The notes: generated from the letters alone by a model not told the origin. 64,000 bases of DNA from Octopus sinensis (GCF_006345805.1 NC_042999.1:141918001-141982000); one strand, 5' to 3'. Numbered from the stretch's first letter, positions 1 through 63,069 are shown. Numbers and translations: made by a program.

Positions 1-702
1 GCTCCAACTCTTCGACTTGGTCGTGATCGTGCAAAGGATTTCCAAGCTGGTTCAGTCCGAGGTAAGACAAAACGCAAAAGAAAATTGGATTCCAGCTCTG
101 ATGATACACTGTTTGCTCTGTCTGTTTGCAATTCTGAATTGCAACAAAGATGTCAATCCCTCACAAATGTTGGATCTGAATCTTACCGAAAAGCAGTTCA
201 CAAATTTCTTGAAACAAAAGAAGTTATGGATTTATTAATGCTACCAGATGAAGTTTTTTCAAGTCAACCTCCTTGTGAGCCAATTCGGGGAGAAATTTAC
301 CTCATGAAAATAGATCCTTCACAGGAATCCAGTGACTGGACTAAAGATGGCTACTCTTGGTTAAGTTTAGGATCGAATGATTTAATCTTGAATCAGAGCC
401 CTGCTCTGCGTCAAAGTACTTTTCGAATGTTAGTTAATGAGATTGAAACTTGTCTGCTAAAACATGTTTATCGTTCTTTTAATAATAACCAAAAAGTTGT
501 CATTCATTATGTTACTGATGAAAGACTTAGTAACAGTAAGTCTTATCCACATTCTATGGACATCACTGGAACTTCATCAGTACCACAAACCCATTTAGGA
601 ATTACTCAGTATTACCACCAGCTAGTGGAAGATTGTAATGTTGACAGTCAGAAATCATCTGAGGCTCTCTGGGAGATGGCCCCCACCAACAAGGAGAAAT
701 CT
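1..702 (+). CDS. Coding exon (5' end outside window) encoding a basic KTKRKRK patch and a CG-1-like DNA-binding domain
   Basis: Frame 1 is open from base 1 to the GTAAGT donor at 703 (phase 0). Motif order PPxxPxxGEIYL...DWTKDGYSW...KHVY...VVIHY resembles the CAMTA CG-1 domain (P..G...RKDGYxW...R.Y.L...VLVHY). No downstream partner exon recognised before 11 kb. Confidence 0.7.
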
Positions 703-1022
703 GTAAGTTAATGATACTTTTTCTTTCTTTTTTTTTTACCGATATTAGATCATATTACCTTATATTCTGGATTTTTATGTTAAGCTCTACATTCAGCCTG
801 CTATACCAAGGTTTATTGAAGATCATTATTTTATTACTCTAATATCTACTTTTTTTCCATACTGGTATGCATTCAATAAGTCTCTAGTATTCCTCATCAC
901 CATTTTTGTCTTTATCCTGCATCATTTTATCTGTGAAGTTCATTAACTTTCTCATACCTGGCCTCACTACTTCTTTCTGTTTTCTTCGATCTGCTCATCA
1001 CACATCTTCCACTATCTGTTGC

Positions 1023-3038
1023 TTTGCCGTAGTCAGTACCGCTTGTGGTACCAGTGCCGGTGGCACACAAGAATCCATCCGAACGTGGCCGTAGTCAGTA
1101 CCGCATCACTGGCCATCGTGCTGTGGGCACATAACAAACACCATCCGGTCGTGGCCGTTCGCCAGCCTCATCTAGCACCTGTGTCGGTGGCACATAAAAA
1201 CACTTTCCGAAGACCCGGCAAGACTAGTCAGGCCATAAACCATGGCCCCTACCTGGGACGTAGTCAGTCCACTGTGCATACCTTCCTCCTTGTGATACTT
1301 GTGAAGGCCTGTTGAGGCAAGTGAAAATCAAATCAAAATCAAAATCAATCAAAACAAATCAAAATAGATGAACATCAATGGAATTTGTATCTTTGTGGTA
1401 CAGTGCCGGTGGCACACAAGAGAAAACCATCCGAAAGTGGCCGTAGCCAGTACCGCATCGACTGGCCTCCGTTCTGTGGGCACATGACAAACACCATCCG
1501 ATCGTGGCCGTTCGCCAGCCTCATCTGGCACCTGTGTCGGTGGCACATAAAAACACCATCCGAAGACCCGGCAAGACTAGTCAGGCCATAACCCATGGCC
1601 CCTACCTGGGACGTAGTCAGTCCACCTGTGCATACCTTCCTTCTTGTGACACTTGTGAAGACCTGTTGAGGCAAGTGAAAATCAAATCAAAACAAATCAA
1701 AATAGATGAACATCAATGGAATCTGTATCTTTGTGGTACCAGTGCCGGTGGCACACACTTTGTGGTACCAGTGCCGGTGGCACACATGAGAACCATCCAG
1801 TGCCGGTGGCACACACTTTGTGGTACCAGTGCCGGTGGCACACATGAGAACCATCCGAACGTGGCCGTAGCCAGTTCCGCATCGACCGGCCTCCGTGCTG
1901 TGGGCACGTAACAAACACCATCCGATCATGGCCGTTCGCCAGCCTCATCTGGCACCTGTGTCGGTGGCACATAAAAACACCTTCCGAAGACCCGGCAAGA
2001 CTAGTCAGTCCACTGTGCATACCTTCCTTCCTTCTTGTGACACTTGTGAAGACCGGTTGAGGCAAGTGAAAATCAAATCAAATCAAATCAAAATAGACAA
2101 AATAGATGAACATCAATGGAATTTGTATCTTGTGGTACCAGTGCCTGTGGCACACAAGAATCCATCAGTGCCGTAGTCAGTGCGGTGGGCACATGACAAA
2201 CACCATCCGATCGTGGCCGTTCGCCAGCCTCATCTAGCACCTGTGTCGGTGGCACATAAAAACACCATCCGAAGACCCGGCAAGACTAGTCAGGCCATAA
2301 CCCATGGCCCCTACCTGGGACGTAGTCAGTCCACCTGTGCATACCTTCCTTCTTGTGACACTTGTGAAGACCTGTTGAGGCAAGTGAAAATCAAAATCAA
2401 ATCAAATCAAAACAAATCAAAATAGATGAACATCAATGGAATTTGTATCTTTGTGGTACCAGTGCCGGTGGCACGTGGCACATAAGAAAACCATCCGAAC
2501 GTGGCCGTAGCCAGTACCGCATCGACTGGCCTCCGTGCTGTGGGCACGTAACAAGCACCATCCGATCGTGGCCGTTTGCCAGCCTCATCTGGCACCTGTG
2601 TCGGTGGCACATAAAAAACACCATCCGAGCGTGGCCGTCTGCCAGCTCGTCTGGCACCTGTGTCGGTGGCACATAAAAAACACCATCCGAGCGTGGCCGT
2701 CTGCCAGCCTCGTCTGGCACTGTGTCGGTGGCACATAAAAACACCATCCGAGCGTGGCCGTCTGCCAGCCTCGTCTGGCACCTGTGTCGGTGGCACATAA
2801 AAACACCATCCGAGCGTGGCCGTTTGTCAGCCTCGTCTGGCACCTGTGTCGGTGGCACATAAAATCACCCACTACACTCTCGGAGTGGTTGGCGTTAGGA
2901 AGTGCATCCAGCTGTAGAAACACTGCCAGATCTGACTGGACTGGTGCAGCTTTCGGGCTCCCCAGACCCCAGTTGAACCGTCCAACCCATGCTAGCATGG
3001 AAAGCGGACGTTAAATGATGATGATGATGATGATGATT
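1023..3038 (+). mobile_element. Non-autonomous retroposon with internally amplified tandem repeats and an RTE-type 3' tail
   Basis: Marker AATAGATGAACATCAATGG recurs at 1363, 1701, 2101 and 2421. A ~60-bp subrepeat occurs about 5 times at ~2560-2860. Ends in CCAACCCATGCTAGCATGGAAAGCGGACGTTAAA(TGA)n, the same tail as the RTE copies elsewhere in the window. Confidence 0.75.
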
Positions 3039-11177: not shown

Positions 11178-11723
11178 ATGCAAAGACTAAATAACACGAC
11201 TGCATATAAAACGTCTTCTGGTAATAAAGTTGCGGGAGGTGAATGTAAAAGAAAAGCTATAACGCTTGAAGAGAAGCTAGATGTAATACAGCGTTTTGAA
11301 CGTAATGAAAGAACATGTGATATTGTTCGTGCAACGGGAATAAAAGAGTCTACTCTACGCACCATTAGAGACAATGCCGAAAAAATTAAAGCTAGCTATA
11401 TTGCTGGAACAAGCCTCAGTGCTTGCAAATCTGTAAGATCGCGACCAAGGGAACTTGAGGAGATGGAGCGGCTTTTATGTTTGTGGTTAGAAGATCAATC
11501 AGAAAAACTATCTGGAACAAGCTTTCTCACTATAAAAGAAAAAGCTTTATCAATTTATGAAGACCTGAAGAAGAAAGCCGAAAACCCGGCAATCGTGCCT
11601 GCTTTTAGTGCTAGTAGTGGCTGGTTTGTTGGTTTTAAGAATCGTTATACTTTTTATAATGTGAGGTGTGGTGGTGAAGTTCTTAATACACACGAGGAAC
11701 GTGCTATGACATTTCGTCCTAAG
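11178..11723 (+). CDS. Unit 1 exon 1: Tigger/pogo-derived HTH_psq + CENP-B HTH DNA-binding domain
   Basis: Intact 182 codons: KRKAITLEEKLDVI...ELEEMERLLCLWL...FSASSGWFVGFKNRY. Donor AAG|GTACTG (phase 0) lies just after the HTH; no DDE domain or TIR recognised. Confidence 0.8.
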
Positions 11724-12253: not shown

Positions 12254-12693
12254 CCTCTAGCACACCAACAGCGTTCACCTTTGGCTATTTCTGATTTGAA
12301 TCAACCGGTGGAATTCAGTTCATCTGACCAGTTAAAAGTCAATTCTAACAACGATATACAAAAGGCTATTCAACCTTTCAACATGAATGATGTGCATCTT
12401 TCTAGTCGATCTATCATTGATATTGAACAAACTGGGAGATCTTTCGGAGTAAAACCTCGCATGAAACGGCTTCCTAAATTGAAACGCCAATTTGGATCCG
12501 GAGCTAAAGATTTATCAGTGAACAGATCTCATTTATCTCAGAGGCCATCCAACCAAATTAGATCTCATCAGCGATGGATAAAAGAATCTACTGGTAATTC
12601 TTCTGTTGGAGAGCAGCATTTTGACGTAGTTTTAAATAAAAATTCTGTAGAATACAATTCAAAAGTACCAAAAATTAACAGCAATTCAATAGC
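12254..12693 (+). CDS. Unit 1 exon 2: low-complexity basic linker
   Basis: Acceptor TTTTCTTTTCAG|CCT (phase 0), open frame PLAHQQRSPLAISD...NSIA, donor GC|GTAAGT (phase 2). Confidence 0.8.
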
Positions 12694-12940
12694 GTAAGTG
12701 TCTTAAAAACATTTTTTTTTCTTTCAAAGAGAAATCTACTTTTCGTTTTGTGTGTATAAAATGACAAATTGTTTTATCTTAATGTGTAACATTTCACTTT
12801 TATATAATACAGATGATATTTTCTGTTAGATATATAAACTATCAAATATTTTATTACATAATGTATCAATATTCAGTTTTGATGCATTTTATATTCGAAA
12901 ACATTTCGATTTCATTGATAACAATTTATTTTATTTAAAG

Positions 12941-36819: not shown

Positions 36820-37640
36820 AGCATCATTTACATGCCATTGGCACAGGAGCCTGTCAGGCAACCTGGCATCAATAACATTCAGATAGTGTTTTTTACATGC
36901 CACCATCACGGGAGCCAGCCTAGGTTACTGACATCGGCCACATCCGGATGGTGTTTTTTACATGCCACTGGCACAGGAGCCAGTCAGGGGACACAGGCAT
37001 CGACCATGTTCAGATGAACAGCAAGCAGCCAGTCAAGGGGCACTGGCCACAGCTGCGATTTTGGTTTTACAGTATGCAATAGGTGTAATTGATTGTCATC
37101 ATCGTTTAATGTCCGTTTTCCATGCTGGCATGGGTTGGACAGTTTGACTGAGGTCTGGAGAACCAGTAGCTGCACCAGGCTCCAATCTGATCTGGCAATG
37201 TTTCTACAGCTGGATGCCCTTCCTAATGCCAACCACTCTGAGAGTGTAGTGGGTACTTTTTACATGGCACCGGGACAGGAGCTAGTCAGGCGAGCCTGGC
37301 ATCAATCATGTTTGGATAGTGCTTTTTACATGCCACCGGCACAGTAGCCAGTCAGGGGGTACTGGCATCAGCCACATTCGGATGGTGCTTATTACATGCC
37401 ACCGGCACGAGGACCAATCAGGCGGTCCTGGCATCGATCACATTTGAATAGTGCTTTTTACATGCCACCGGCATGGGAGCCTGTCAGGCAGACCTGGCAT
37501 CAACCATGTTCAGATGGTGCTTTTTTACATGCTACTGGTATGGGAGCCAGTCAGGGGACACTGGCATTGACCACAATCAGATGATGCATTTTACGTGCCA
37601 CCGGAACAGTTGCCAGTCAGGCGGCACTGGCCACAGCTAC
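36820..37640 (-). mobile_element. RTE-tail retroposon copies with ~60-bp subrepeats
   Basis: Reverse-complement tail ATCATCGTTTAATGTCCGTTTTCCATGCTGGCATGGG at ~37095, plus repeated GTGCTTTTTACATGCCACCGGC units. Confidence 0.7.
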
Positions 37641-39166
37641 AAATGGTATGGTTCATTTCCAATGAGAAAATATTACCTTGTTTGGAAACATGTAAAGATT
37701 GACAACAGAAAGGCACCTGGCCATAGAAAATATGACCCTTACAAGCCTGGAAAATTGGGCATTAAAACAATGATGCTGACTTTGGAAATCAGATAAGATT
37801 ATGACTAAGCTAGGAGCCCTTAAAGGCCTTATAATGTTCATAGAACTTGTATAGTTTCAATTAATCCCAAATTACCATTTCATGCAGATTATGAGACCAT
37901 CGTGGTAAATGAAAATATATGACTACACAGCAGCGAGTATAACGAATAGCCTTTCTCAGAACTGTATTGGCCTTATAATTTCATTAAAGACCATGTTAGC
38001 CAAACAAATAGATGATCTACTTAAGTCTCATTCAGATTCACAGATTAATAAAGCCATATCCTCTATCTATCAAAATTTTTATCATTGTTATCCACAATAA
38101 ACTATTTGTAATGTCAGTTTCAGCAATCATTGTACAAAGAAAGCTATGTCACAAAACATGAATTCTATATAAGAATATATGAACCCAAAATTGTTTTAGT
38201 TCAAGGCTAGGAATATATTCAGAAGTAAAATTATATTTGTTACCTGACTGAATGGATATGTTGTCAGCATTGTCATCACTAGAAAGAATGATCAGTCACT
38301 TGGAAATTAATTGGGCAGTACACATGTTTTCAAAACAAGATTGAATCTTCCCAGATTAGAATAGAATGCAAGGAAAATTATTAAGCTATCAGTGATGTAC
38401 AAAACAATTCAAAAATAGAGATGTTCATTAAAAATATTTTTTTTTATTTTCATAGGCATGAAATTATCCAAAAAAATTTAAAGATGTAAATGAAGTTACT
38501 ATACTATCTAGCAATTGTAAGCGAATAAATAAAACCACAAACTTTTCTAAATTCTAGTTGGGACCTTTTTTCCAGAAAATGGTCTAAAACAAGTAGAGTG
38601 CACAAAAGGTTCATTAAAATTTGAGTCCTACGAAGGAAAAGGATAACGTTAAAGCTGTTGTTATGAAAACAATTAAATGCTACTTCCTATAAGTCGGTAA
38701 TGGAAACTTTTGATTGGCTAAAATTACATTAACGATTTGTTACTTTTTTATTACTAATTTCTAGGAAACAAAAGGTGATTTTTGCAATTAGCATGCAAAA
38801 CTGTATCAGTTACAGTTCTGGTGGTTATTTGTAAAAGTTCTTAGAAATTTTTCCCTGTGTTACGAAACCAAATTTTATCATTTACTAACCAAAGATTGAT
38901 GAGGTAAACAAAACATTCTCATGTGAAATGAGGTAGAACGGATTTGACTAAGGATCGTAGCTGGCTGACTCTGTATAAGAAAATGTCGGGTTCGTAATTT
39001 GAGAAGGAAAAAGTGGCAGGCAGTCAAGCGAATGATGATCAGTCTGGGAACTTGTTTGTTTTTCTTGTAATGTTTATAACGTCAAACATTTTGTTAGTAG
39101 AGTTACAGTAGAAATACGAAACTTATATTATGAATAAACTCCTGTTCGTATATGCACTCACACACA

Positions 39167-40200
39167 CGGTAGGGTTCTCATGTACGAACAATTCTTTAAA
39201 CAAACATCGAATAACGAACGATTTTTCCGAAGAAAATTAAACTCGCTTAACGAGCTAAAATTTGATTAACGAAGCACGAACAGACTACGCACGCATATGT
39301 GAGTGGTAGAACGTTTACGAACGGTACGCTAAATGAATAAATTGTAGTGAATAACGAACGAATAGACTACGCACACATATAAGTAGCTGGGAAGGATATA
39401 CGAACGGTTCGTTAACGTACGCAAATTTTCATATTTCATATAGAAAATATTATTTCTCATTTTTAGCTAAAAAAAATAAAACCATGGATCGACAGAGGCG
39501 AATTAGAAAATCAATTACTATAGAAACTAAGAAAGAAATAATACATAAACATGAAAATGGAGCTAGTGTTAGCAACCTTAGTTTGGAGTACAGAGTGGCA
39601 AAATCAACTATCTGCACCATACTGAAAAACAAATGTAAATTTAAAAATGTTCGGGTAGCTAAGGGAATAACCAAGCTTAGTAAATCGCGTAACAATTTTA
39701 TTGAAGAGATGGAAAATTTACTTTTGGTATGGATTAAAGAAAAAGAAATTGCTCGTGAAAATATAAGTGAATCGATGATTTGTGTAAAAGCCAAACAATT
39801 ATTTGATGATCTTGTAGCGAATTCTCCCAGTGGAAATGATACTGTGCTGGATTTTCTTGCTTCAAAGGGTTGGTTTACCAGATTCCGGAAAAGAAATGGA
39901 TTACATAATGATGTTAAGTGTGATAAGTCTGCTAGTGCAGACCATAAAGTAGCTCGTGAGTACCACTTTTTAAACTTTATGGCTATGAGTGGCTTCGTTT
40001 CACAGCAAAATTTGAACTATGATGAAATGGGGCTTTTTTTTTTTTTTTTTTTTAATAAATTGCCGTTCAGAAGACCCTAGAGCACTTAAAATCATAAGAA
40101 CCGCCTTGGGGTTTGGACGAACCACAAATCACCAGTCATCTTTTCACTGAGTAGTTGTCTGTGGTGTTTTGTCCTACTGTGCCTAAGTACCTTAGGGACA
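39167..40200 (+). mobile_element. Truncated Tigger/pogo element (5' end plus DNA-binding ORF 39484-40080)
   Basis: AACGAAC-rich subterminal region; ORF RKSITIETKKEII...EEMENLLLVWI...FLASKGWFTRFRKR; the DETGLFWKK motif has decayed into a poly-T run. Confidence 0.75.
39484..39955 (+). CDS. Candidate alternative first exon of unit 3: Tigger-derived psq + CENP-B HTH
   Basis: ATG at 39484; consensus donor C|GTGAGT at 39956 just after the HTH, phase 1. In frame with acceptors at 41628 and 44386. Confidence 0.5.
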
Positions 40201-40789
40201 ACAATCTTCTCTCGAAGTTCTTTTGGTAATGGATAATGACTCAACTAAACCGTCTTTAATGTACTGATTGCCGGAACAGTTTAGTTTGTAAAGTGCATTT
40301 CTTGCCTGTCATCACATCTTCTGTTCTCTAGGTCATGGACCAACAGGTCTACATAGTCCGAGGTATATTTGTAAAAAATTTCATTAAAAAATAAATATTT
40401 TCTTGAAAGTTAAGACGAATTGAAGTGGACGCCGGTGAATTTTCCGAAATTCCCCACCTAAAACACTTTCCCCAAAAGTTTTGTATATTCGAAATCTACA
40501 TGATATAACTCATATTCGTAGAAAATTTCATTAAAAAATATCCATTTTTCTGAAAGTTATGATCATCCAAAGTCGGGGGGTGGGGGCAGAAATCTGTAGT
40601 TATGCCAATTTATATATGATGTTTAATATTACATTAGCTTTAAATATTAAGTGACAGTTTACCAAATTCACAGTGAAACTTTATAACACTGGAATCGTAC
40701 GTAGAATTACAAGATGAATTAATATTCACTGATATTACTGCTCTGCATCTACAAATGAAATGCTTCAGTTCATCGTAGGAGTCACTGGG

Positions 40790-41130
40790 TATTTTGGACC
40801 TAACAATATCCCTCATCCAGGTGACTTGACCTAGGTTGGTGAAGCATAAGCTTCTCCAAGTGGTGTTCTACTGGCCTCACCGATCACCTCTTTTAATCCA
40901 GAAAGATTTAGATGCTTTCTCAGCAGCCTCTACGGTGTTTTTGATTGATCATTAGCTCGTTTTTATAATGCCCGGTATACAATTTGCGAACTCTCGACTG
41001 GCAAACACCTCGCTCTCCACCCATTTTGCGGCAGTCTTTTACAACTAGCTCCTGATATTTAGCTATCTCTCTTGCGCCTCCTGCCATCTTGTAGGTCACG
41101 GCAAACTCCAACAGAATTAGCTGCTTTGTA
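40790..41130 (-). mobile_element. HERO/R2-group LINE 3' remnant (restriction-like endonuclease region)
   Basis: Minus-strand LILLEFAVTY...REIAKYQELV..DCR resembles the IELTVPWE...K.AKY.ELV motif. Confidence 0.5.
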
Positions 41131-41644
41131 ATTATGAACATTAATATTCGTGCTAAAAAAAAAGACTTGTGTAATTACGTCCCTTTAATGCCTCTCTGCT
41201 GAAATATTTCATTTGAGTGTTATAGTGACGGTCACAGTTGGCGGGACAAGAATTTTGACTCTAAATAATATATGTTCAATGAAGTTTAAGTTTTTGTGTG
41301 TTTTTGAAAGACTGATATTCCATGCTGTGATTGTCCTTTACCATAGTTTCTATTAATTTTAATACCAGTTCTCGGAAACTACCGAAAATTAGTCCCTTTT
41401 AAGGAGAGAGACAAAAAGAGAAGGATGATGTCTCTTGATTGTCTGTGATATCCCTTCATTTTTCACTATTAATATATTTGTTTATGCTACCCTTCTTTTT
41501 CACTATTGATATATTTATTTATGCTATCATTTGGTTAACTTATTAAACACTGAAAATTTTAATATCTGTTTAATCTCGAATATCGCCGCATCAATTAACT
41601 TCCAAGTCACATCATTTTATTTCTTAGGAAATCTAGTTAAGATA

Positions 41645-42116
41645 ATGCCTAGGCTCAAAAAATACAAGACTGAAGCAGAGCGACGAGCGGTTACACGACA
41701 GCGTGCAAGAATCAAAAGAGCTAATGAAACACCTTTAGAGAGAGATCAAAGATTAATGAATTTGTCTTTGAATGAATGGCATCGGCGAAGAAATGAGACA
41801 TTTGAAGAGAGAAAGGAGAGACTTAAAAGGCTGTCCTTAAATGCACGAAAGAGACGGGCTAAGGAAACGGCAGAAGAGAGAGCAAATCGGCTTCGAAAAC
41901 TATCTGAGAACGTAATGAAAAGACGTGCCGGAGAATCGAGTCAGAAAAGAAACAAAAATACAAACAAGTGTGCTTCAAAGCCAAATTGCCATAACACTCA
42001 AGTGGCTAAAAGGCAGCGGGGCCGAAAGCCGACTGCTAAAGGCATTAAGATCGCTCTGACCAACTGTTATGATGACCAAGAAAAATATTACCTGGAGCAG
42101 ATGCATCAAGATCCTG
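41645..42116 (+). CDS. Unit 3 exon 1 (coding part): STPR-type repeats
   Basis: Three full 23-aa repeats (41726-41932) plus a degenerate fourth. Acceptor TTTCTTAG| at 41627; donor CCTG|GTATCT (phase 1). Confidence 0.8.
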
Positions 42117-42443
42117 GTATCTGTCCCTATGATTTTTTTTATTCATTTGAGGGTTATAATAACTAGTGTATCTAATTTTCTTTTACTCTAACACCATTAA
42201 TGTAATAACTACCATGTCTAATTTTTGCGGTTGTCTTTTTTCCTCTGACAAGAAATCAATGTTTATATTCTTTCTGCTTTGGATTTGTTTCTTTTTGTTG
42301 GATTTCTGTAATCTACTGACACGTTTTTAACTTTACATATCCCATGCCATTTTGACAACTATTCAAGCATGAAATTCGTTTCTTTTATATTTCTGTTTCA
42401 TTAATGTGTGTGAGAGGTGTGTATGTATGTGTGTGTGTGTATA

Positions 42444-43554
42444 CACACACCTCGACTTACGACCACAATAAATTTTAAAAATCGATTTTCGGACGTTGGG
42501 CAGCTGCGCGTACGATGACTGGCATCATCTAGCAACGCATGCCTCCCTCAGACCCAGGCATCCACTGCCTGCAACCGTCTCTCACTCAGTCGCTTTCAAG
42601 CATCAGTTGCGTGTGGATTTGTTACAATTGTATCTGAAATACCCCTAAAATGACTGGTAAAAGGAAAATGCTTTCATCTACAGATGCGCCAGCTAAGAAG
42701 TCAAGGAAGGCTATTGATTTAGACTGTAAAATGAAGATTATTCGGCAGTATGAAGACGGAAAGAAGGTGAATACAATAGCACATGACTTGAAGTTATCGC
42801 ATTCCACGGTATCAACAATACTTAAAGACAAAGAAAGAATTCGTGAAGCTGTGAAAAGTTCTGCACCTATGAAGTCTACAATTTTAACTAAACAACGACA
42901 AGGACCCATCCATGAAATGGAGAAATTGTTATTCATGTGGATGAAAGATTTAATACAGAAAAAAACACCCATCAGCCTTCTTACAGTGCAAACAAAGGCT
43001 AGAAGTTTGTTTCAGACTTTAAAATCACGCTCCGGATACGATTACGCACAAGATTTTCAGGCTAGTAAAGGGTGGTTTATGCGTTTTAAAAAAAGATTTG
43101 CTTTGCATAATGTACGTGTCGCAGGAAGTACAGATGAAGGAGCCCAAAAATTCGTTGATAGATTTGACGAAGGTTATCTACCAGAACAAACATTCAACGT
43201 AGACGAAACAGACTTGCTATGGAAACGAATGCCTACTCGTACGTACATACACCAAGGAAAAAAGATGCAGAATTCAATGCTTTTAAGGATAGGTTAGCTT
43301 AGTTGCTTGGTGGTAATGCCGCGGGTTCTAAGCTGAAGCCTTTTCTAATTTGTCATTCGGAAAACCCTTTAATTTTTGTTTATAGTAAAATAGAGTACAT
43401 ATGTATTTTTCATATTATGAACAATAATTATGGATTAAATTTTTGTGTTTTATATTTTTATAACCCGTTTGAATGAAAATAGTGCTGAAAAATATTATTA
43501 ATCCGACATACAACCTGCTAGTCGGAACGAAATTCGGTCGTAAGTCGAGGTGTA
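42444..43554 (+). mobile_element. Internally deleted Tigger with both TIRs, in the unit 3 intron; intact DNA-binding ORF 42650-43297
   Basis: TIRs CACCTCGACTTACGACC (~42448-42464) / GGTCGTAAGTCGAGGTG (43536-43552), TA-flanked. ORF RKAIDLDCKMKII...FQASKGWFMRFKKR...NVDET.L.WKRMP, then a frameshifted DDE start (KDRL.*LLGGNAAG.KLKP). Confidence 0.85.
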
Positions 43555-44385
43555 TATCATATTAATATATCAACTCCGAATGAAAAGTTGTCAAAATACC
43601 ATAGGAATCGTAGAAGTAACAATATGTTCATAAACTTTGCTCAATTTATGTTACATTCTAATATAAATATTGCTACTATGTTCTGATGTAATTTCATCTT
43701 TGATTCGCGGCTGGTGCTATTTGTGTCAACATTCTCGGTATGCATTCTGTCCACTACTAACGAAGGCTTGACTCTCACAGTCTCATGTTGAATGTGGCAT
43801 ACTCCTCAGGGCATAAATAGCTATAACTCTACATTGGATTACGATTCATTGGCAACAGCTTCACTTGCTTTGGAAAATTCAATGAAATTTCCAATTGTTA
43901 TGAATTATAATATCCTATCATTAATTCCTTTCAATAATAGTAAATAATAGATTGAAATATAGATATCTTAATTTGTATTGATTACAAAAATGAGGCATAG
44001 TATCGAATGACGTTGATAGAAGGCTACTACCTTTACCTAATATAAAAACGTTGAACAGCCGTGATTAACGGATTAGACGGCGAGTAGAATGAAGTTTGAA
44101 TAAAAGACCTCTTTGAACTGGTTCATGATACAAATATACATATAAATTCTTAATTTTGATAATGATAAAATGAACGTTGTTGGTTTGGGGAAATAGCAGT
44201 GAAGATGAGCTATATTAATTTTGAGCTTATAGATACAATATATTACACTTTAAAAACAAAATTTACACTAAAATGGGAAATGTGAAGTTTGTGAAAATAG
44301 AGTAATATTTCAAAATACTTGTTTGTTGTTTTCAGTCAGAATAATGTTTATTTGGATGTAACTTGTAACTTTGATGTTTTGACAG

Positions 44386-44596
44386 GAAAATTTGAAGCTC
44401 CCATTGAAAAATCAGAACTTAATTCCATTCAGTCTTCTCAACATTCTGTTGAAACAAAAACATTACAAAAAGTCTCTGTTGAAAATAATGCAAATTTGAA
44501 GCAGCAAACCAAAGCAACAACTAGAGCACAGAGAAACCAATTGATCTCAGTCAACACATCTAATGAAGTGAATTCAAAATTATGCAAAACTAACAG
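44386..44596 (+). CDS. Unit 3 exon 2: linker
   Basis: TTTTGACAG|GA; KFEAPIEKS...SKLCKTN; donor AG|GTGAGA. Phase 1 in, phase 2 out. Confidence 0.85.
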
Positions 44597-44699
44597 GTGA
44601 GATAGAATTTTGTTAACATATGTTATCTGTTTGATTTGAGCAAATGTTCTTAGAGATGTATGCCCTTCCTACAACAAAACATCCAAATAGATGGTAGGA

Positions 44700-46380
44700 A
44701 TGGAACTTTTTGTCAGTCAACCAATCTGAAACAAATAGTTTTGTGTGCATTGTCTAGAGATTGTCAACAAACATTCTGTATTCAGAATGATGAATGCAGG
44801 CTCACCATTGATGCACAGGACAAGAAAGGCATGGAAGTGCTATTGTGAGGCTGTTGAATATGGAGAATATATGGGATAAAGAGGGGACTACCTCATCCTG
44901 ACCCTGCAAAGGAACCAGAAAATCAAGTTGACATAGATGAAGGAAGGATATGAAGAGAGTGAATGTTGTGGGTCCATCAGGAACAGTTGCAGAGATGCTC
45001 AAAATATCTAGTGAGATACATGAAGGTATCATACCCCATGATAGGCATAGTAGTATCACTGTAAACTGCTGCAAAGGCAAAGGAGATGCCTGAGAGAGAA
45101 GCAGCTATAGCAGAATCGAACAACTTGATCAGTTTATGAAGGTCATGAAACAGCTATAGCACAATTGATCTATGACGGGGTAGATGTACATTAGATGCAA
45201 TTTGGCTTTGTGCCCAAAAGAGGTAACATGGATGCAATCTTTCTTGTGAGGCAAGAGAAATACTTGGCTAAGAGTAAACCACTATACTTGGCATTCATTG
45301 ACTTGGTGAAGGCATTTGACATGGCACCATGTTCAGTAATTTGATGGTCTCCAAAGAAACGAAGTATAGCAAATGACTTGTGGGTGCTATACAAGTTATG
45401 AACAAAGATTTAGTAAATAAAGTGAGGATTCAGTGATGAATCTGATGTGAAGGTAAGTAGCCATTACATTTAGTCCTTAGTCCTACAGATTGTCATGGTG
45501 GTGTTTTAAGACATGCTGCCCATGCATCTATATGCTGATGATCTAGTCCTCATATGTGAATCTATAGAAGTATTAGATGAAAAATTCAAGGTAAAGAAGC
45601 TAAATCTAAAATCAAGAGGCTTCAAGGTAAACTGAGCATAGACTAAAGTTTTAGCAAATAGGAAAGAAGATAGGACCCTAATGCCTTTAGGGAAATGACC
45701 TTGCTCAGTATGCTGTATCTAATATAAACTATTGACACACAAGAGATGTGGAATCACAGGCATGCTAACAGAAAGCAAACTTCACATGTGATTGATGCAC
45801 TGGAAGGGTATATGCTTGAATGTCTCACTAGAAATAGTTGATAGCTTTTGTTACTTTGGATGTGGTTAGCAAGGGAGGTGGTTGCACTCAAAAGTACAGT
45901 AGCCATAGTAAGAACAGGTTGGAAAAGTTCAGAGAGCTTCTATCATGGCTGGTAACAAAGATCTTTTCCCTTAGACCTAAAGATAGATTGTATAATGCTT
46001 TTATTAGAATTGTGGTGCTGCATAGTAGTGAGATATGGGCCTAAAATGCAGAGGACTTTAGAAGACTTAGAAAGAAATGAAGCTTGCATGCTCTGTTGGA
46101 TGTGCTGAATAACAAGGTACAATTGGTTTGAGAGAAAAAATTATTATAAGAGAAATCAGGTGTGTGCAAGAAAGAAGAATGTACCGGTATGTGATGCATA
46201 TGGCTGAGGACAGCCAGCATGGAAGGAGAATGTTAAACGATGATGACGAATGTGGATGGAGCTTGCAGAAGAGGGAGACCCAGGAAGACATAGAATGAAG
46301 TGGTAAAGGCTGATCTCAGGACTTTGAACCACACAGACAAAATAACAAGGAACTGGGATGACTGGCAATATGTGGTTCTC
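44700..46380 (+). mobile_element. Degraded RTE LINE
   Basis: QFGFVPKRG.MDAIFLVRQ...LYLAFIDLVKAFD at ~45190-45330; RLEKFRELL...LHSSEIWA at ~45900-46040. Confidence 0.8.
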
Positions 46381-46980
46381 AAAAAGATTTACCCATATCA
46401 GTGAAACTGAGATTCTGAAAGCACAACATGCCCAACTGTCTCCCCTCCATCACCATTTCTTCCTTAAGACATCCCCACCACTTACCATCATCTCTCTTAA
46501 CTGAACTGTTCTTAGCAGAACTGGTATCTTCTATTAGCTTTTCCCTAATACCACTTATCCTTCTCACTACCTGGAACCATTTTGCTTATTATCTCCATTT
46601 CTCACACACTTTAACCCCTCATCCTACAACAAAAGCCACCTCCCTCTCTACTCTGGTCCCTTTCAGTCAGAAGGGATCCTACTTTTACAAGTTGCATAGT
46701 AACTTCATTAGTGCTGATGCTATGAAAAAATGCACCAAATACACACAGTAAAGGGGCTGGTGTTAGGAAGGGCATCCTGCTATGCAAACTTTGCCATGTC
46801 TGACATTGGAACATGATGCAGTCTTCGGATGTGTTGAATCCTGCAGGCCATCCAACCAATGCCATTGTAGAACATAGACATTAAATGATGATGATATTGA
46901 TTCTGTGTTGTTTGAATTTATTTACATGTTCTAAAATATTTGATGTTACTATTGACTGTTTTATGTTTTTGTATTTGAAG

Positions 46981-47143
46981 TGAAATCTTACTTCATCCAC
47001 AATCAGCTGTACCCCCTGTTCAAGAGAAACGCATTTTAGTGGTTCCAAATCATCAAACAGCAGTGATGTCCAATCTATTTTCCATGTGGAAAGCAGGGCG
47101 TTTGTGTGACTCATACATCAGTAATGGTACTACAACTATAATG
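46981..47143 (+). CDS. Unit 3 exon 3: BTB N-half
   Basis: TTTGAAG|T GAA ATC...VPNHQTAVMSNLFSMWKAGRLCDSYISNGTTTIM|GTAAGT. Confidence 0.9.
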
Positions 47144-48450: not shown

Positions 48451-48981
48451 TAGAATTAGTGCAGGTTTGGCAGTTGGTGTTCAGGTTGTTTGTATATGAG
48501 GAAGGTTACAGAGGAAAGGGTTATATCATTTCTATAAAAAAATTGGGATCTATTCCATCTCAATCACAGATTTTTAAAATAATTTTTTTAAACAAAACAG
48601 TTTGAAACTTCGAATACTGGTAGAATTTCTCACATAGAACATGGTTTACTCTGAACGTTTTTGACAAAATTTTGTATTTTAGAAGTTATTTTGTGTTAAA
48701 GTTGTCATATTTGGGTAATTTCAACCAACCATATGTATTCAGTTGAAGAAAGTTACTACTGTTTAAGATAGTAATTGAATGCTATCAATGCCCCACTTCA
48801 GTGCTTCTCTGAAATTTTCTTTAGTCAGAATTTAGTCAATGTATTAGGATAATTTTGTCATAAGATGTTAAGTGAGTGAACAGTACAAAGTTATAGAGTA
48901 AAGTTAATTATGCTGTGAAAAAAAATAGAATCACTGTAATTTTTGCTAGATTTATTTCAGATGTATTTTTTATGTTTTCAG

Positions 48982-50031
48982 GTCCATAAAATGGTTTTAG
49001 GAGCTGTGTGTCCAAAATTGCTGCCAATTCTCCATCATTCATCAAAAGGTTCATTCCCTAAAGTGACATTTCCAAGTTCAGTCAGTAAAGAGGGACTTTT
49101 AGCATTTGCAGAATACATGTACAGTGGTGTGTTAGATCTGAATGAAGAAATTCTAGTCCAACTAAAGACTATTGGTGAGAGATTAAGTATGAAAGATTTT
49201 GAACAACTTTGCTGTAATGAATTGAACAAAGCTAAGACAAAAGATATTTTATCAGCTGTGGTGGAACCTTTGTTGGCAGAACCTTGTTCTTTGTCAGGAT
49301 TATTTCCTTCCAGAACACATGGAGACACTAACGAAGTACAAAATTCTATGTTAATTAAGTTGTTTAGAAATAATTACTGCACTAGTAATAACATGCAGCA
49401 TGATGTTCTTGTTAGTACTGGATCTAGTACATCTTCTGATATAAGGACTGAAGAAATTATGACTGCAAATCAGATCATTGACATCCAGAGAGAAGTGGAA
49501 CCAGAGACAGCGTCTGCAACAGACCACAACTCTCTACAGTTAAAAATAGAACCTTATAGTCCTGGTGAAAACCAACATAGTTTTCAAGAAGAATTATGCA
49601 TGGATATTGGTAACACTAGTTCCAATAATAATCATCATCAAACACCTGCTACCAGTGCCACTTCTGCAAATATCATCAATACAGACAATGACTTAACAGT
49701 TACTTATTCAGACAACCAGTATAAAAATGATCTAAATATGGTTTCCTGTGATAGCATCAATATATCTGATACCCCTCAATCTGAAGAGATTTGTTTATCA
49801 CAGCATACAGAAGATTGTGATAAAGATACTGATAATCAGAAAGAACTACGGTTAATTTCAATAACGTCTGTGGCAGGCAATATAAATGAAGACAATCTCA
49901 GCAATAATTCCGATTTGGTAGAGATCTCCAGTACAATGCCTACAAATACAACACAACTGCAAACATCAAATTCTAAACCATACCCTATTAGTTTATTTTC
50001 TGTGAATAACAGTGAATATACAGCTCTATGA
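48982..50031 (+). CDS. Unit 3 terminal exon: BTB C-half plus tail
   Basis: TTTTCAG|GTC CAT AAA ATG; paralog of the other terminal exons. Spliced CDS totals 1896 nt. Confidence 0.9.
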   Translation, partial: VHKMVLGAVCPKLLPILHHSSKGSFPKVTFPSSVSKEGLLAFAEYMYSGVLDLNEEILVQLKTIGERLSMKDFEQLCCNELNKAKTKDILSAVVEPLLAEPCSLSGLFPSRTHGDTNEVQNSMLIKLFRNNYCTSNNMQHDVLVSTGSSTSSDIRTEEIMTANQIIDIQREVEPETASATDHNSLQLKIEPYSPGENQHSFQEELCMDIGNTSSNNNHHQTPATSATSANIINTDNDLTVTYSDNQYKNDLNMVSCDSINISDTPQSEEICLSQHTEDCDKDTDNQKELRLISITSVAGNINEDNLSNNSDLVEISSTMPTNTTQLQTSNSKPYPISLFSVNNSEYTAL

Positions 50032-60269: not shown

Positions 60270-63069
60270 AATATACATAGATACATACATACATATATAT
60301 ATATATACATACATATATATTATATTTAATAATAATTTTATAAAAAATTAAGTAAAATGTACGGTTACTCACCAATAATGAATGATATTGATTTAAGACG
60401 ATGATGAAAATAATGAGGGTAATGACTGCACAGCAAAGAAGATTTAAAGCTCTTCAGATGTTTTAGGGGATGTCGTATCTTCATGCAAGGCTTTTTTGGT
60501 GATCTTGAGGAACATTGTGGTGGGAAGTTGCTGTCGTTTCTTCTTGGTGGTGAGGAGAATTTTATATGTCTGCAATCCTGGCATTTTTAAATTGGAGAGA
60601 CCGAACCATATAGGGATCCCATGCTCCTGCTTTCCCTTGGAATTCCTTTGCTGTCCTTAAAAGATCAGACAGACATTTGATTGTCAGGCTCACCCCATCT
60701 CCCCCTTCCTCTGGATCTGGTGCTTCCTCCTCCTCTTTGCTGGCAGACATTAACTCCAACAAATCTTCATCTATCAGGGTTTCAGAGTAGGCATCAATGA
60801 GGTCCTTGACCTCATCTTGTGTAATGTCAAAACCTTCACCACCAAGTACCTTTGCCAGTTTCCTCTCATTGTTGAAAGCCTCATGCTGAATATCTGCAGG
60901 TGAGAAGCCCCCGTAGTCCTGGACACACTCTGGCCATACCTTCTTCCAGCATGCGATGAGGGTTTCTTTTGTCATTTCTTTAAGAGCAGCGTGGATGACT
61001 GACAGGCACATTGTGTTCGTGAACTTCTCATCCAAATCCATTGCATCCACAGTGTTGGAGAGTGTGTAGAATGCATGGATCATCCCTTGATCTGTAGGCT
61101 GGATGAAGGAGGTGGTATTGGCAGGGAAGATCTCAACTTGAACTTCCTTGTGGTTCAAATCCAAAGAGTGACCACCAGCAACACCTTGAGTTCCATGCAA
61201 ACATTTTGGAAGTATACTTTGGCTTGAGGGATGAAGTATTGGTGGAAGCAATTCAAAGTTAGACCTTTGGTAATCCAGGCCTTGGGGTTGCGCATCCAGT
61301 GGACAGGCAGCAGATTTTTATTCTTATTTTTGAAGGCCCTCAGGTTCATGGATTTGTAGATAAGTCCTGGTTTCATCATGAAGCCAGCAGCATTGCCACA
61401 CGTAATTAGCATCACTTTGTCCTTCTGTGCCTTAAACGCTGGGGCTCTGGCTTCATCCTTCATGATCTATGTTCTGGAAAGCATCTTCTTCGAGAACAAG
61501 CCAGTCTTGTCCATACTAAAAACCTGTTCCAGCTTGTATCCCTTGTCCTCAATAATCTACCTGAAAGTCTCAAGGTACTTCTCGGTGACTTTTTTGTCAG
61601 CTGATGCTGTCTCTCCATGCAGAGAAACACACTTTATTTTAAACCATTTCTGGAAACGGTCAAACCATTCCTTGCTGGTTTGAAAATCTTTGGGCTCCAA
61701 TGTTGTCAGTGATCTTGGTTGCGGTTTTTTGGTGCCCTCTGCTCTGTCTCCTCTGTGAAACTGCTGGTATAATTTCTGCACTTTCTTGTGGGTGATGTTA
61801 CCACTCAAGGAGATGTTTTTCTTCTTGCAGTCAATGATCCACAATACTAAGGCAGATTCCTTCCTGACAAAGCGCTTATTTCTCACTATCGTTATCTTTT
61901 TGGCACTTTCACTGAAACTTACTGCTATGGTAGTCCTGATCACCACCTTGTTCTTCTTTATTTAGCGTATGATGCTTTCATTGACAGCATAATAACGACC
62001 TACTGCAGCATAACTTTTACCTTCCTGGAACATGTCCAGCAGTTGTACCTTCTCATGGAGCGTCATAACAGCTTTCTGGTGCTTAGATTCACTGCCAGAA
62101 GTCTTAGAAGGTGTAGGGCATTTTGGGCAGCATCTTAGGGCTTTAATAACATGCTGCAAAAAATGCAGTACTCAGCAAAATACTGGAGATAACTTGATGC
62201 AGTTTTTCCAAAAAAAGAAACCTACAGAAAAATCTTCTTTGCATCTAATATGCACAAACCACAAATGGGAGATTGAGCAGAGATTAAAAATAATCATGGT
62301 TTTGAAAAATTTAGTTTGTATTACCACTAGATACAGTAATCTATAATATAATAATAAGAGAGAGTGAGTGAGTGAGAGAGGGGGGAGGGAGGGAGGGACC
62401 AGTAAGTGACCTAATTTCAATGATGCTATATTGGCTCATGACCTTAAAAATTATTCTGTTGAAATAAATATTGTGTATGATCAAATGTAGTAATGATTTA
62501 AAAAAATACACTAATAGTTGCTATACTAATTAGCAAGCTTTGAAGGAAAGCAGGAATAAGAGATACAAGATACAGTGTACTCGTATCTAAAAAAAAATCA
62601 AGCGACATAATGCATGGCTATTCTAATCAAAGGTATCTTCAGCTGTGAAGGGGCATCCAATAAACTGACAAATATGGTATCTTATTATTAATAGTTTAGC
62701 CTTAAAAAGTGTGGAAAAGTATATATTGGCACAAAAAATGCCATAAAAAATCACGGATGATATTTATGATTCCGCAAATAACCGGGCCCACAAATTTGAG
62801 AAAAATGCTCATGAATTTATTCCTCAACCAACTATTTGGTTGGAACAAATGTTCTTAGAGTTGAATGCCCTTATAGTTGAACACCCATACAAGAAGTAAG
62901 AATGGAACCCTTTTGTCAGTCAAGCAAACAGAAGCAAATGGTGATGTGTGCATTGTCCAGAGATCTTTAACAAACGCTTTGTATTGTTTGAATTTATTAA
63001 TGGGTATACTTAATGTTACTGTTGACTGTTATCTAACTAGTTATGTGTTTTATGTTTTTGTATTTGAAG

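Follow-up and report, generated by a model that had tools for sequence, protein, structure and literature searches.

In the fly genes lola and mod(mdg4), a constant N-terminal BTB domain is spliced to variable 3′ exons, partly in trans, which yields 20–30 isoforms. In the protocadherin and UGT1A clusters, variable first exons lack a splice acceptor and are each driven by a separate promoter. Here we describe an octopus locus, LOC115209617 of Octopus sinensis, that probably joins one of three alternative 5′ coding cassettes, as judged from sequence, to a constant linker and BTB part. It lies in a stretch of 64,000 nucleotides (GCF_006345805.1 NC_042999.1:141918001-141982000; the window), and positions are counted from the first letter of that stretch.

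Transposase capture has produced host-transposase fusion genes such as KRABINER (Cosby et al., bioRxiv 10.1101/2020.05.07.082677). LOC115209617 probably arose in this way, by alternative splicing of transposase exons onto an ancestral gene that encoded an STPR domain and a BTB domain. The mechanism is of a known kind, transposase capture. As in the fusions of Cosby et al., a transposon inserted into or beside a host gene contributes a DNA-binding domain by alternative splicing, the parental transcript coexists and the captured part is under purifying selection. Unlike in those fusions, the transposase part forms the N-terminus; it contributes the start codon and, in place of an acceptor upstream, a donor within its own frame. 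Its host partner is BTB at the C-terminus, whereas there KRAB or SCAN occupies the N-terminus. There are two independent pogo captures on one gene, and the host is an octopod, not a tetrapod.

A BTB domain combined with a pogo-related helix-turn-helix (HTH) DNA-binding domain is also found in the BTB-pipsqueak proteins Pipsqueak and Bric-a-brac (Siegmund and Lehmann 2002, as cited in PMC10027918). Those have an N-terminal BTB and an old, fixed psq domain, whereas the octopus HTH is N-terminal and recent, with transposon remnants still flanking it. According to the portion of a genome survey that deals with them, most CENPB-type and THAP proteins of Octopus bimaculoides carry BTB/POZ (Mukherjee and Moroz 2023, PMC10027918). 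The genes described here very probably belong to this family. In that portion the survey treats CENPB-type/THAP-BTB proteins as separate proteins and calls BTB itself transposon-derived, and it gives no account there of alternative cassettes on one gene, an STPR partner, a tandem array or transposon remnants.

A preliminary description of this stretch called the locus a counterpart of lola/mod(mdg4). The functional analogy stands: a single locus combines one BTB module with different DNA-binding domains by alternative splicing. Membership fails because the gene topology is reversed, with BTB as the constant C-terminus, variable 5′ cassettes and three isoforms. Nor does the BTB appear closest to the fly TTK type; in a ranking by match to solved structures it comes nearest to gigaxonin (E 2e-6), ZBTB17 and PLZF, and the BTB of fly CG6765 gives only E 0.54. 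The arrangement resembles protocadherin and UGT1A in that a set of coding exons shares one splice target, the first constant exon downstream. It differs in that acceptor-like sites precede two of the octopus cassettes, and in that the cassettes are unrelated domains rather than paralogues.

Gene models, cassettes and shared exons

Self-comparison and the list of open reading frames (ORFs) of the 64 kb reveal four BTB gene copies in tandem on the plus strand. LOC115209617 is the third, unit 3 (39.4–50.0 kb). Pfam finds a DNA-binding domain in each of three ORFs 5′ of its shared exons. The exons and their splice sites are listed here, with a slash at each splice junction.

39484–39955, plus strand: HTH1 cassette exon, coding part, with its own ATG; first coding exon of isoform X3; equals residues 1–157 of XP_029633927.1
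39956–39961, plus strand: GTGAGT splice donor of HTH1, in the frame GTA GCT C/GT GAG TAC; phase 1, with C+GA giving Arg
41628–42116, plus strand: STPR cassette exon; acceptor-like AG at 41626–41627 (tttcttag/GA), ATG at 41645, donor CCTG/gtatct at 42116/42117, phase 1; first coding exon of X2
42650–43238, plus strand: HTH2 cassette exon, with its own ATG; donor C/GTACGT (ACT C/GTACGT), phase 1; first coding exon of X1
44386–44596, plus strand: shared linker exon; phase-1 acceptor ttttgacag/GA, donor AACAG/gtgaga, phase 2
46981–47143, plus strand: shared first BTB exon, for the N-terminal portion of the BTB domain; identity to O. bimaculoides 97.5%
48982–50031, plus strand: shared last coding exon, encoding the remaining BTB domain, a long Ser/Asn-rich tail and the stop codon

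All three cassette donors lead to the acceptor at 44386. Splicing HTH1 (39484–39955) to the linker (44386–44596), the first BTB exon (46981–47143) and the last exon (48982–50031) gives 1896 nt in frame with a single terminal stop. Its product equals RefSeq isoform X3 (XP_029633927.1, 631 aa) at every residue, with the junction ..HKVAR/KFEAP. A protein search with the STPR, linker and BTB model as query returned a 100% identical match, isoform X2 of LOC115209617 (XP_029633926.1). Isoform X1 (XP_029633925.1, 670 aa) opens with the HTH2 ORF, which is left at the exon end 43238 (junction ..RMPTR/KFEAP). These three, X1, X2 and X3, are the isoforms that RefSeq lists for the gene, and their Pfam sets are BTB with HTH or BTB with STPR.

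The same trio recurs in the O. bimaculoides orthologue LOC106872008, where X1 carries HTH2, X2 HTH1 and X3 STPR. Its locus (contig L002) is collinear with the window and has orthologues of units 2 and 4 on either side. The preliminary description had proposed that one locus could make HTH-BTB and STPR-BTB proteins, and this is borne out: genuine gene models of both exist in O. sinensis and in O. bimaculoides. Its inventory lacked the HTH2 cassette, located 3′ of the STPR exon and 5′ of the linker. RefSeq already lists the isoforms, as predictions of uncharacterised proteins, and they are hence not new themselves. NCBI Gnomon builds alternative isoforms from transcript alignments only, so those of LOC115209617 presumably rest on RNA evidence. 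At the level of gene models, transposase-derived and host domains lie in one frame by splicing, beside the parental transcript.

Both the STPR domain (FMBP-1 type) and the BTB/POZ domain are identified by profile matches above cutoff. STPRs (PF21107) scores 57.1 bits in ORF 41645–42166 and 49.6 bits in X2 (cutoff 27), and the STPR exon is paralogous to an exon of unit 4 (82%). Pfam finds BTB in ORF 48943–50031. In the spliced proteins BTB (PF00651) reaches 34.8 bits (cutoff 20.5) over profile positions 4–108 of 110, a span covered only after splicing. The linker exon is 97.6% identical to that of O. bimaculoides and paralogous to the unit 4 linker.

Transposon origin and conservation of the HTH cassettes

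ORF 39484–40080 (597 nt) matches CENP-B_N at residues 5–53 (23.9 bits, cutoff 21.2) and HTH_Tnp_Tc5 at residues 74–142 (38 bits, cutoff 22.2), and so encodes a complete bipartite pogo/Tigger DNA-binding module. Its relatives in protein searches are all pogo/Tigger-like proteins, some with DDE_1. The ORF reads 41 codons beyond the donor. Alignment to pogo/Tigger transposases likewise extends past the donor, through ..FVSQQNLNYDEMGLFF, which matches the N.DETGLFW motif holding the first catalytic Asp of the DDE domain. We sought the 5′ end of the transposon at TA/CAGTAGAAATACGAAAC (39106), which is present as a single copy in the window and has no inverted partner there. ORF 42650–43297 also contains CENP-B_N and HTH_Tnp_Tc5 above the Pfam cutoffs, and the HTH2 exon keeps the first DDE motif. 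Transposon remnants flank both captured exons:

39956–40053, plus strand: remnant of the transposase ORF past the HTH1 donor, now intronic, reading ..FVSQQNLNYDEMGLFF and stopped at a 20-T run (40034–40053)
42447–43553, plus strand: internally deleted pogo/Tigger element of 1107 bp that carries HTH2, with perfect 18-bp terminal inverted repeats (TIRs)

The TIRs lie at 42447–42464 and 43536–43553, and two such matches occurred in 0 of 100 shuffles. The element is also found at the equivalent place in O. bimaculoides. Both HTH1 and HTH2 thus contain a transposase-derived domain with remnants around it, the DDE motif and the TIRs.

Both HTH donors sit inside the former transposase ORF. In HTH2 the donor falls at R-T-Y codons that are conserved; in HTH1 its GT is part of an Arg codon, at a position where distant relatives have Ala or Glu. 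The phase-1 C/GTGAGT at 39956 in the HTH ORF at 39484 is present exactly as the preliminary description gave it, and it joins 44386 and 41628 in frame. With both strands counted, the window contains 57 copies of GTRAGT, as many as shuffles do, and chance predicts ~0.27 per 597-nt ORF and ~0.09 in the correct phase. Taken alone the HTH1 donor is therefore only suggestive.

Conservation was assessed against O. bimaculoides and against L001, a 1978-nt contig from a more distant octopod that is collinear with window positions 38199–40072 and equally distant from O. bimaculoides and O. sinensis. Omega was calculated by Nei-Gojobori, and mismatch contrasts by Fisher test. HTH1 differs from O. bimaculoides by 14 mismatches in 472 nt (97.0% identity) with no indel, while the flanks show ~6–7% mismatch and frequent indels (p=0.001 vs exon). 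Omega is 0.18 for HTH1 (synonymous differences, Sd, 8; non-synonymous differences, Nd, 6) and 0.16 for the BTB domain. Relative to L001, HTH1 is 93.6% identical (6.4% mismatch), again with no indel, and omega is 0.44. The upstream flank is 83% identical (16.7% mismatch, p=6e-9 vs exon), and the 85 nt past the donor are 81% identical (19.7% mismatch, p=4e-5 vs exon) with a frameshifting indel. Conservation forms a plateau over ~39500–39950, and identity to L001 falls from 94% to 81% immediately past the donor. At the donor itself, GCTC/GTGAGTAC shows no difference among O. sinensis, O. bimaculoides and L001. On small substitution counts, the pattern is that of a predicted coding exon ending at the 39955 donor. 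Conservation of the HTH exon and its donor had been set as a test beforehand, and we find the donor kept and 39484–39955 constrained rather than decaying neutrally. For HTH2, omega against O. bimaculoides is 0.43 and all indels are in-frame. Both transposase-derived parts, HTH1 and HTH2, appear to be under purifying selection, again on small counts.

A separate observation concerns the shared last exon. Between O. sinensis and O. bimaculoides, the last two thirds of 48982–50031, the Ser/Asn-rich tail, have omega ~1.8, with 34 non-synonymous against 5 synonymous differences. Synonymous divergence of the tail is 0.03, below the cassettes' ~0.09–0.11.

The Argonauta hians homologue has STPR, linker, BTB1 and BTB2 exons in the same order, and neither its introns nor the 10 kb upstream contain a pogo HTH. 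We therefore take STPR-BTB as the older architecture. HTH1 and HTH2 share 38% identity (BLASTP), and the HTH of unit 1 shares 28% with HTH1, which argues for separate captures, three pogo captures in the array. Beginning from an ancestral STPR-BTB gene, two different pogo/Tigger transposons would have inserted, one upstream of the STPR exon and one in the intron after it. The 5′ parts of the transposases, HTH1 and HTH2, would then have been spliced to host exons from donors within the old transposase frame, with the parental transcript retained. Selection would subsequently have kept the captured cassettes. The products would be three proteins that differ in their N-terminal DNA-binding domains and share one C-terminal BTB module. 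They may act as transcription factors in which the cassette sets the targets and the BTB domain pairs.

Cassette starts and alternative readings

Several points weigh against capture of alternative cassettes as set out above. The isoforms are computational RefSeq predictions, and O. bimaculoides proteins may have guided the O. sinensis models. Contig look-ups of X2, X3 and O. bimaculoides X2 gave no match in an index that holds only the longest product per gene. Substitutions are few (14 and 30 differences), which makes the omega values rough, and L001 is taken as orthologous on the strength of 1.3 kb of collinear flank. That the products bind DNA and pair through BTB is deduced from their domain families. 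Acceptor-like sites just before the HTH1 and STPR ATGs disfavour simple first exons. The site before HTH1 defines one further feature:

39467–39483, plus strand: short non-coding leader before the HTH1 ATG, following acceptor-like tattatttctcatttttag/CT; a candidate internal-exon start

HTH1 could be merely a decaying 5′ fragment of a Tigger-like transposon, with X3 as splicing noise or an annotation artefact. The 41 transposase-like codons past the donor, which end in a poly-T run, are compatible with this, as is a GTRAGT frequency no higher in the window than in shuffles. The initial protein search with HTH1 also matched transposon-like relatives only. Its lack of BTB fusions, which had suggested a dead transposon fragment, reflected a word-index limit, and a later search found proteins containing the query exactly. 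Decay sits badly with an indel-free exon whose divergence is about 1/2 to 1/3 of that of its flanks in two comparisons, with omega of 0.18 and 0.44, with the sharp identity drop and frameshift past the donor in L001, and with a matching isoform annotated in a second species, O. bimaculoides. We consider this explanation very improbable.

The start of each cassette bears on how the choice is made. Each may have its own promoter. Another possibility, which we hold to be real but not probable, is a single promoter: the cassettes would be mutually exclusive internal exons spliced from a shared non-coding leader, or from a transposon-derived leader in the case of HTH1. The acceptor-like tattatttctcatttttag/ ends at 39466, 18 nt before the HTH1 ATG; both O. 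bimaculoides and L001 retain its AG and pyrimidine tract, and the spacer that follows bears 2–3-nt indels between species. Further upstream, block 39200–39298 is unusually conserved against L001 (90–92%) and ends in GTGAGT at 39299 (GTAAGT in L001), 168 nt upstream of the site at 39466. This block could be a transposon-derived leader exon followed by an intron in the 5′ untranslated region (UTR) of HTH1, or a coincidence. A leader exon with a 5′ UTR intron would agree with the finding that an acceptor immediately 5′ of the transposase ORF is common in transposons, as reported by Cosby et al. (bioRxiv 10.1101/2020.05.07.082677). The STPR exon likewise has an acceptor-like site at 41628. Against a single promoter, no leader exon was identified, and the Argonauta STPR exon has no acceptor. 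HTH2 sits in the 5′ region of its transposon, with no AG between the in-frame stop and the ATG.

The acceptor at 41628 also underlies the HTH-STPR-BTB form of the preliminary description, in which transcripts starting at HTH1 would take up the STPR exon as well and encode two DNA-binding domains. Spliced HTH1, STPR (41628–42116), linker and BTB exons give 2385 nt in frame with one terminal stop (junction ..KVAR/NLVKIMPRL), and the route is open and in frame in both O. sinensis and O. bimaculoides. A good pyrimidine tract precedes the acceptor, whose AG is kept in O. bimaculoides, as is the 17-nt spacer to the ATG, with one substitution and no indel. The STPR exons of units 2 and 4 carry an AG and pyrimidine tract 9–24 nt before the ATG, which hints at internal-exon capability. 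An in-frame route from 41628 through 17 nt to the STPR ATG has a chance of ~1/3 x (61/64)^5 = 0.26, so the frame match is about 1 in 4 by chance, and at 94% background identity the retention of the spacer says little. In units 2 and 4 the spacer is phase 0, not phase 1, and therefore behaves as untranslated rather than coding sequence. Ahead of the AG, the pyrimidine tract of O. bimaculoides has lost 21 nt, and in Argonauta the ~70 nt next to the STPR ATG contain no AG. Among matches to the full constant region (O. sinensis, O. bimaculoides, O. vulgaris, Argonauta and Logan assemblies), there is no protein with both PF03221 (HTH_Tnp_Tc5) and PF21107, although the search would be expected to pick up every annotated or assembled protein that has this region. 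We found this claim unsupported, and it is doubtful that the stacked form is a real product; if real, it would probably be minor. HTH2 cannot be stacked, because an in-frame TGA lies 15 nt 5′ of its ATG with no intervening AG.

Two observations concern the STPR exon and its surroundings. Between HTH1 and STPR, O. bimaculoides has ~5.8 kb of extra sequence (L002 10857–16676) with assembly gaps and Helitron-like ORFs. One Helitron-like ORF of this insertion has a similar N-terminal ET..ER..RL repeat, and we considered a transposon origin for STPR on that account; it was rejected at a BLASTP E of 0.027 with no Pfam STPRs match. A literature search on STPR with BTB in cephalopods found nothing specific.

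Neighbouring units and significance

Unit 1 is LOC115209549, and it too alternates N-terminal cassettes. Its products carry either its own pogo HTH exon or a THAP-containing N-terminus that includes ORF 85–711; both join the linker at 12254.

11178–11723 and 12254–12697, plus strand: unit 1 pogo HTH exon and linker; donor AAG/gtactg at 11723/11724, phase 0

The preliminary description regarded the HTH1 donor as comparable in position to that of unit 1. The comparison is loose: the unit 1 donor is in phase 0 and lies ~8 residues further from the HTH domain. ORF 85–711 (plus strand) contributes to the THAP-containing N-terminus of an 875-aa unit 1 product (P0031). In it Pfam reports a weak, sub-threshold resemblance to CG-1, the CAMTA DNA-binding domain (19.7 bits against a cutoff of 23.5; E 7e-4), and this weak match recurs in P0034, a THAP-BTB protein of 901 aa encoded by a transcript-sized Logan contig. 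An O. vulgaris model of 622 aa (P0023) combines the unit 3 STPR, linker and first BTB exon (41645–47143) with a unit 4-type last exon. It is a chimeric or lift-over annotation, or reflects splicing across neighbouring units. Within unit 4, on the minus strand at 60562–61946, lies a further degraded Tigger-like element with ORFs that match DDE_1 and HTH_Tnp_Tc5. Between units, at 1000–3000 and 37400–37800, a tandem or satellite-like repeat is evident from ORFs that overlap on the two strands and contain recurring peptide motifs (..HRHRCQ.RLANGH..).

A wider reading would make the array an octopod-specific hub. Cassettes of unrelated origin (2–3 pogo captures, THAP and STPR) would be alternative and sometimes combined, including the HTH1-STPR stack, with BTB pairing across isoforms and paralogues. 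We put this forward as speculation that is rather unlikely to hold in full. If true, the hub would be a combinatorial transcription-factor code, convergent with fly lola but starting from the other end of the gene and assembled mostly out of transposon sequence.

Transposase capture onto a single STPR-BTB gene, the reading that we favour, would present a locus midway through domestication, with an ancestral DNA-binding exon beside two transposase-derived ones captured independently. The transposons can still be recognised from their remnants, a truncated DDE motif and intact inverted repeats, and the capture is datable, since the Argonauta homologue lacks it and at least three octopodids have it. 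LOC115209617 would be a concrete case of one gene switching DNA targets by 5′ exon choice. It would extend the transposase-capture model, worked out in tetrapods, to a mollusc, to N-terminal capture via an in-frame donor and to a BTB host partner.

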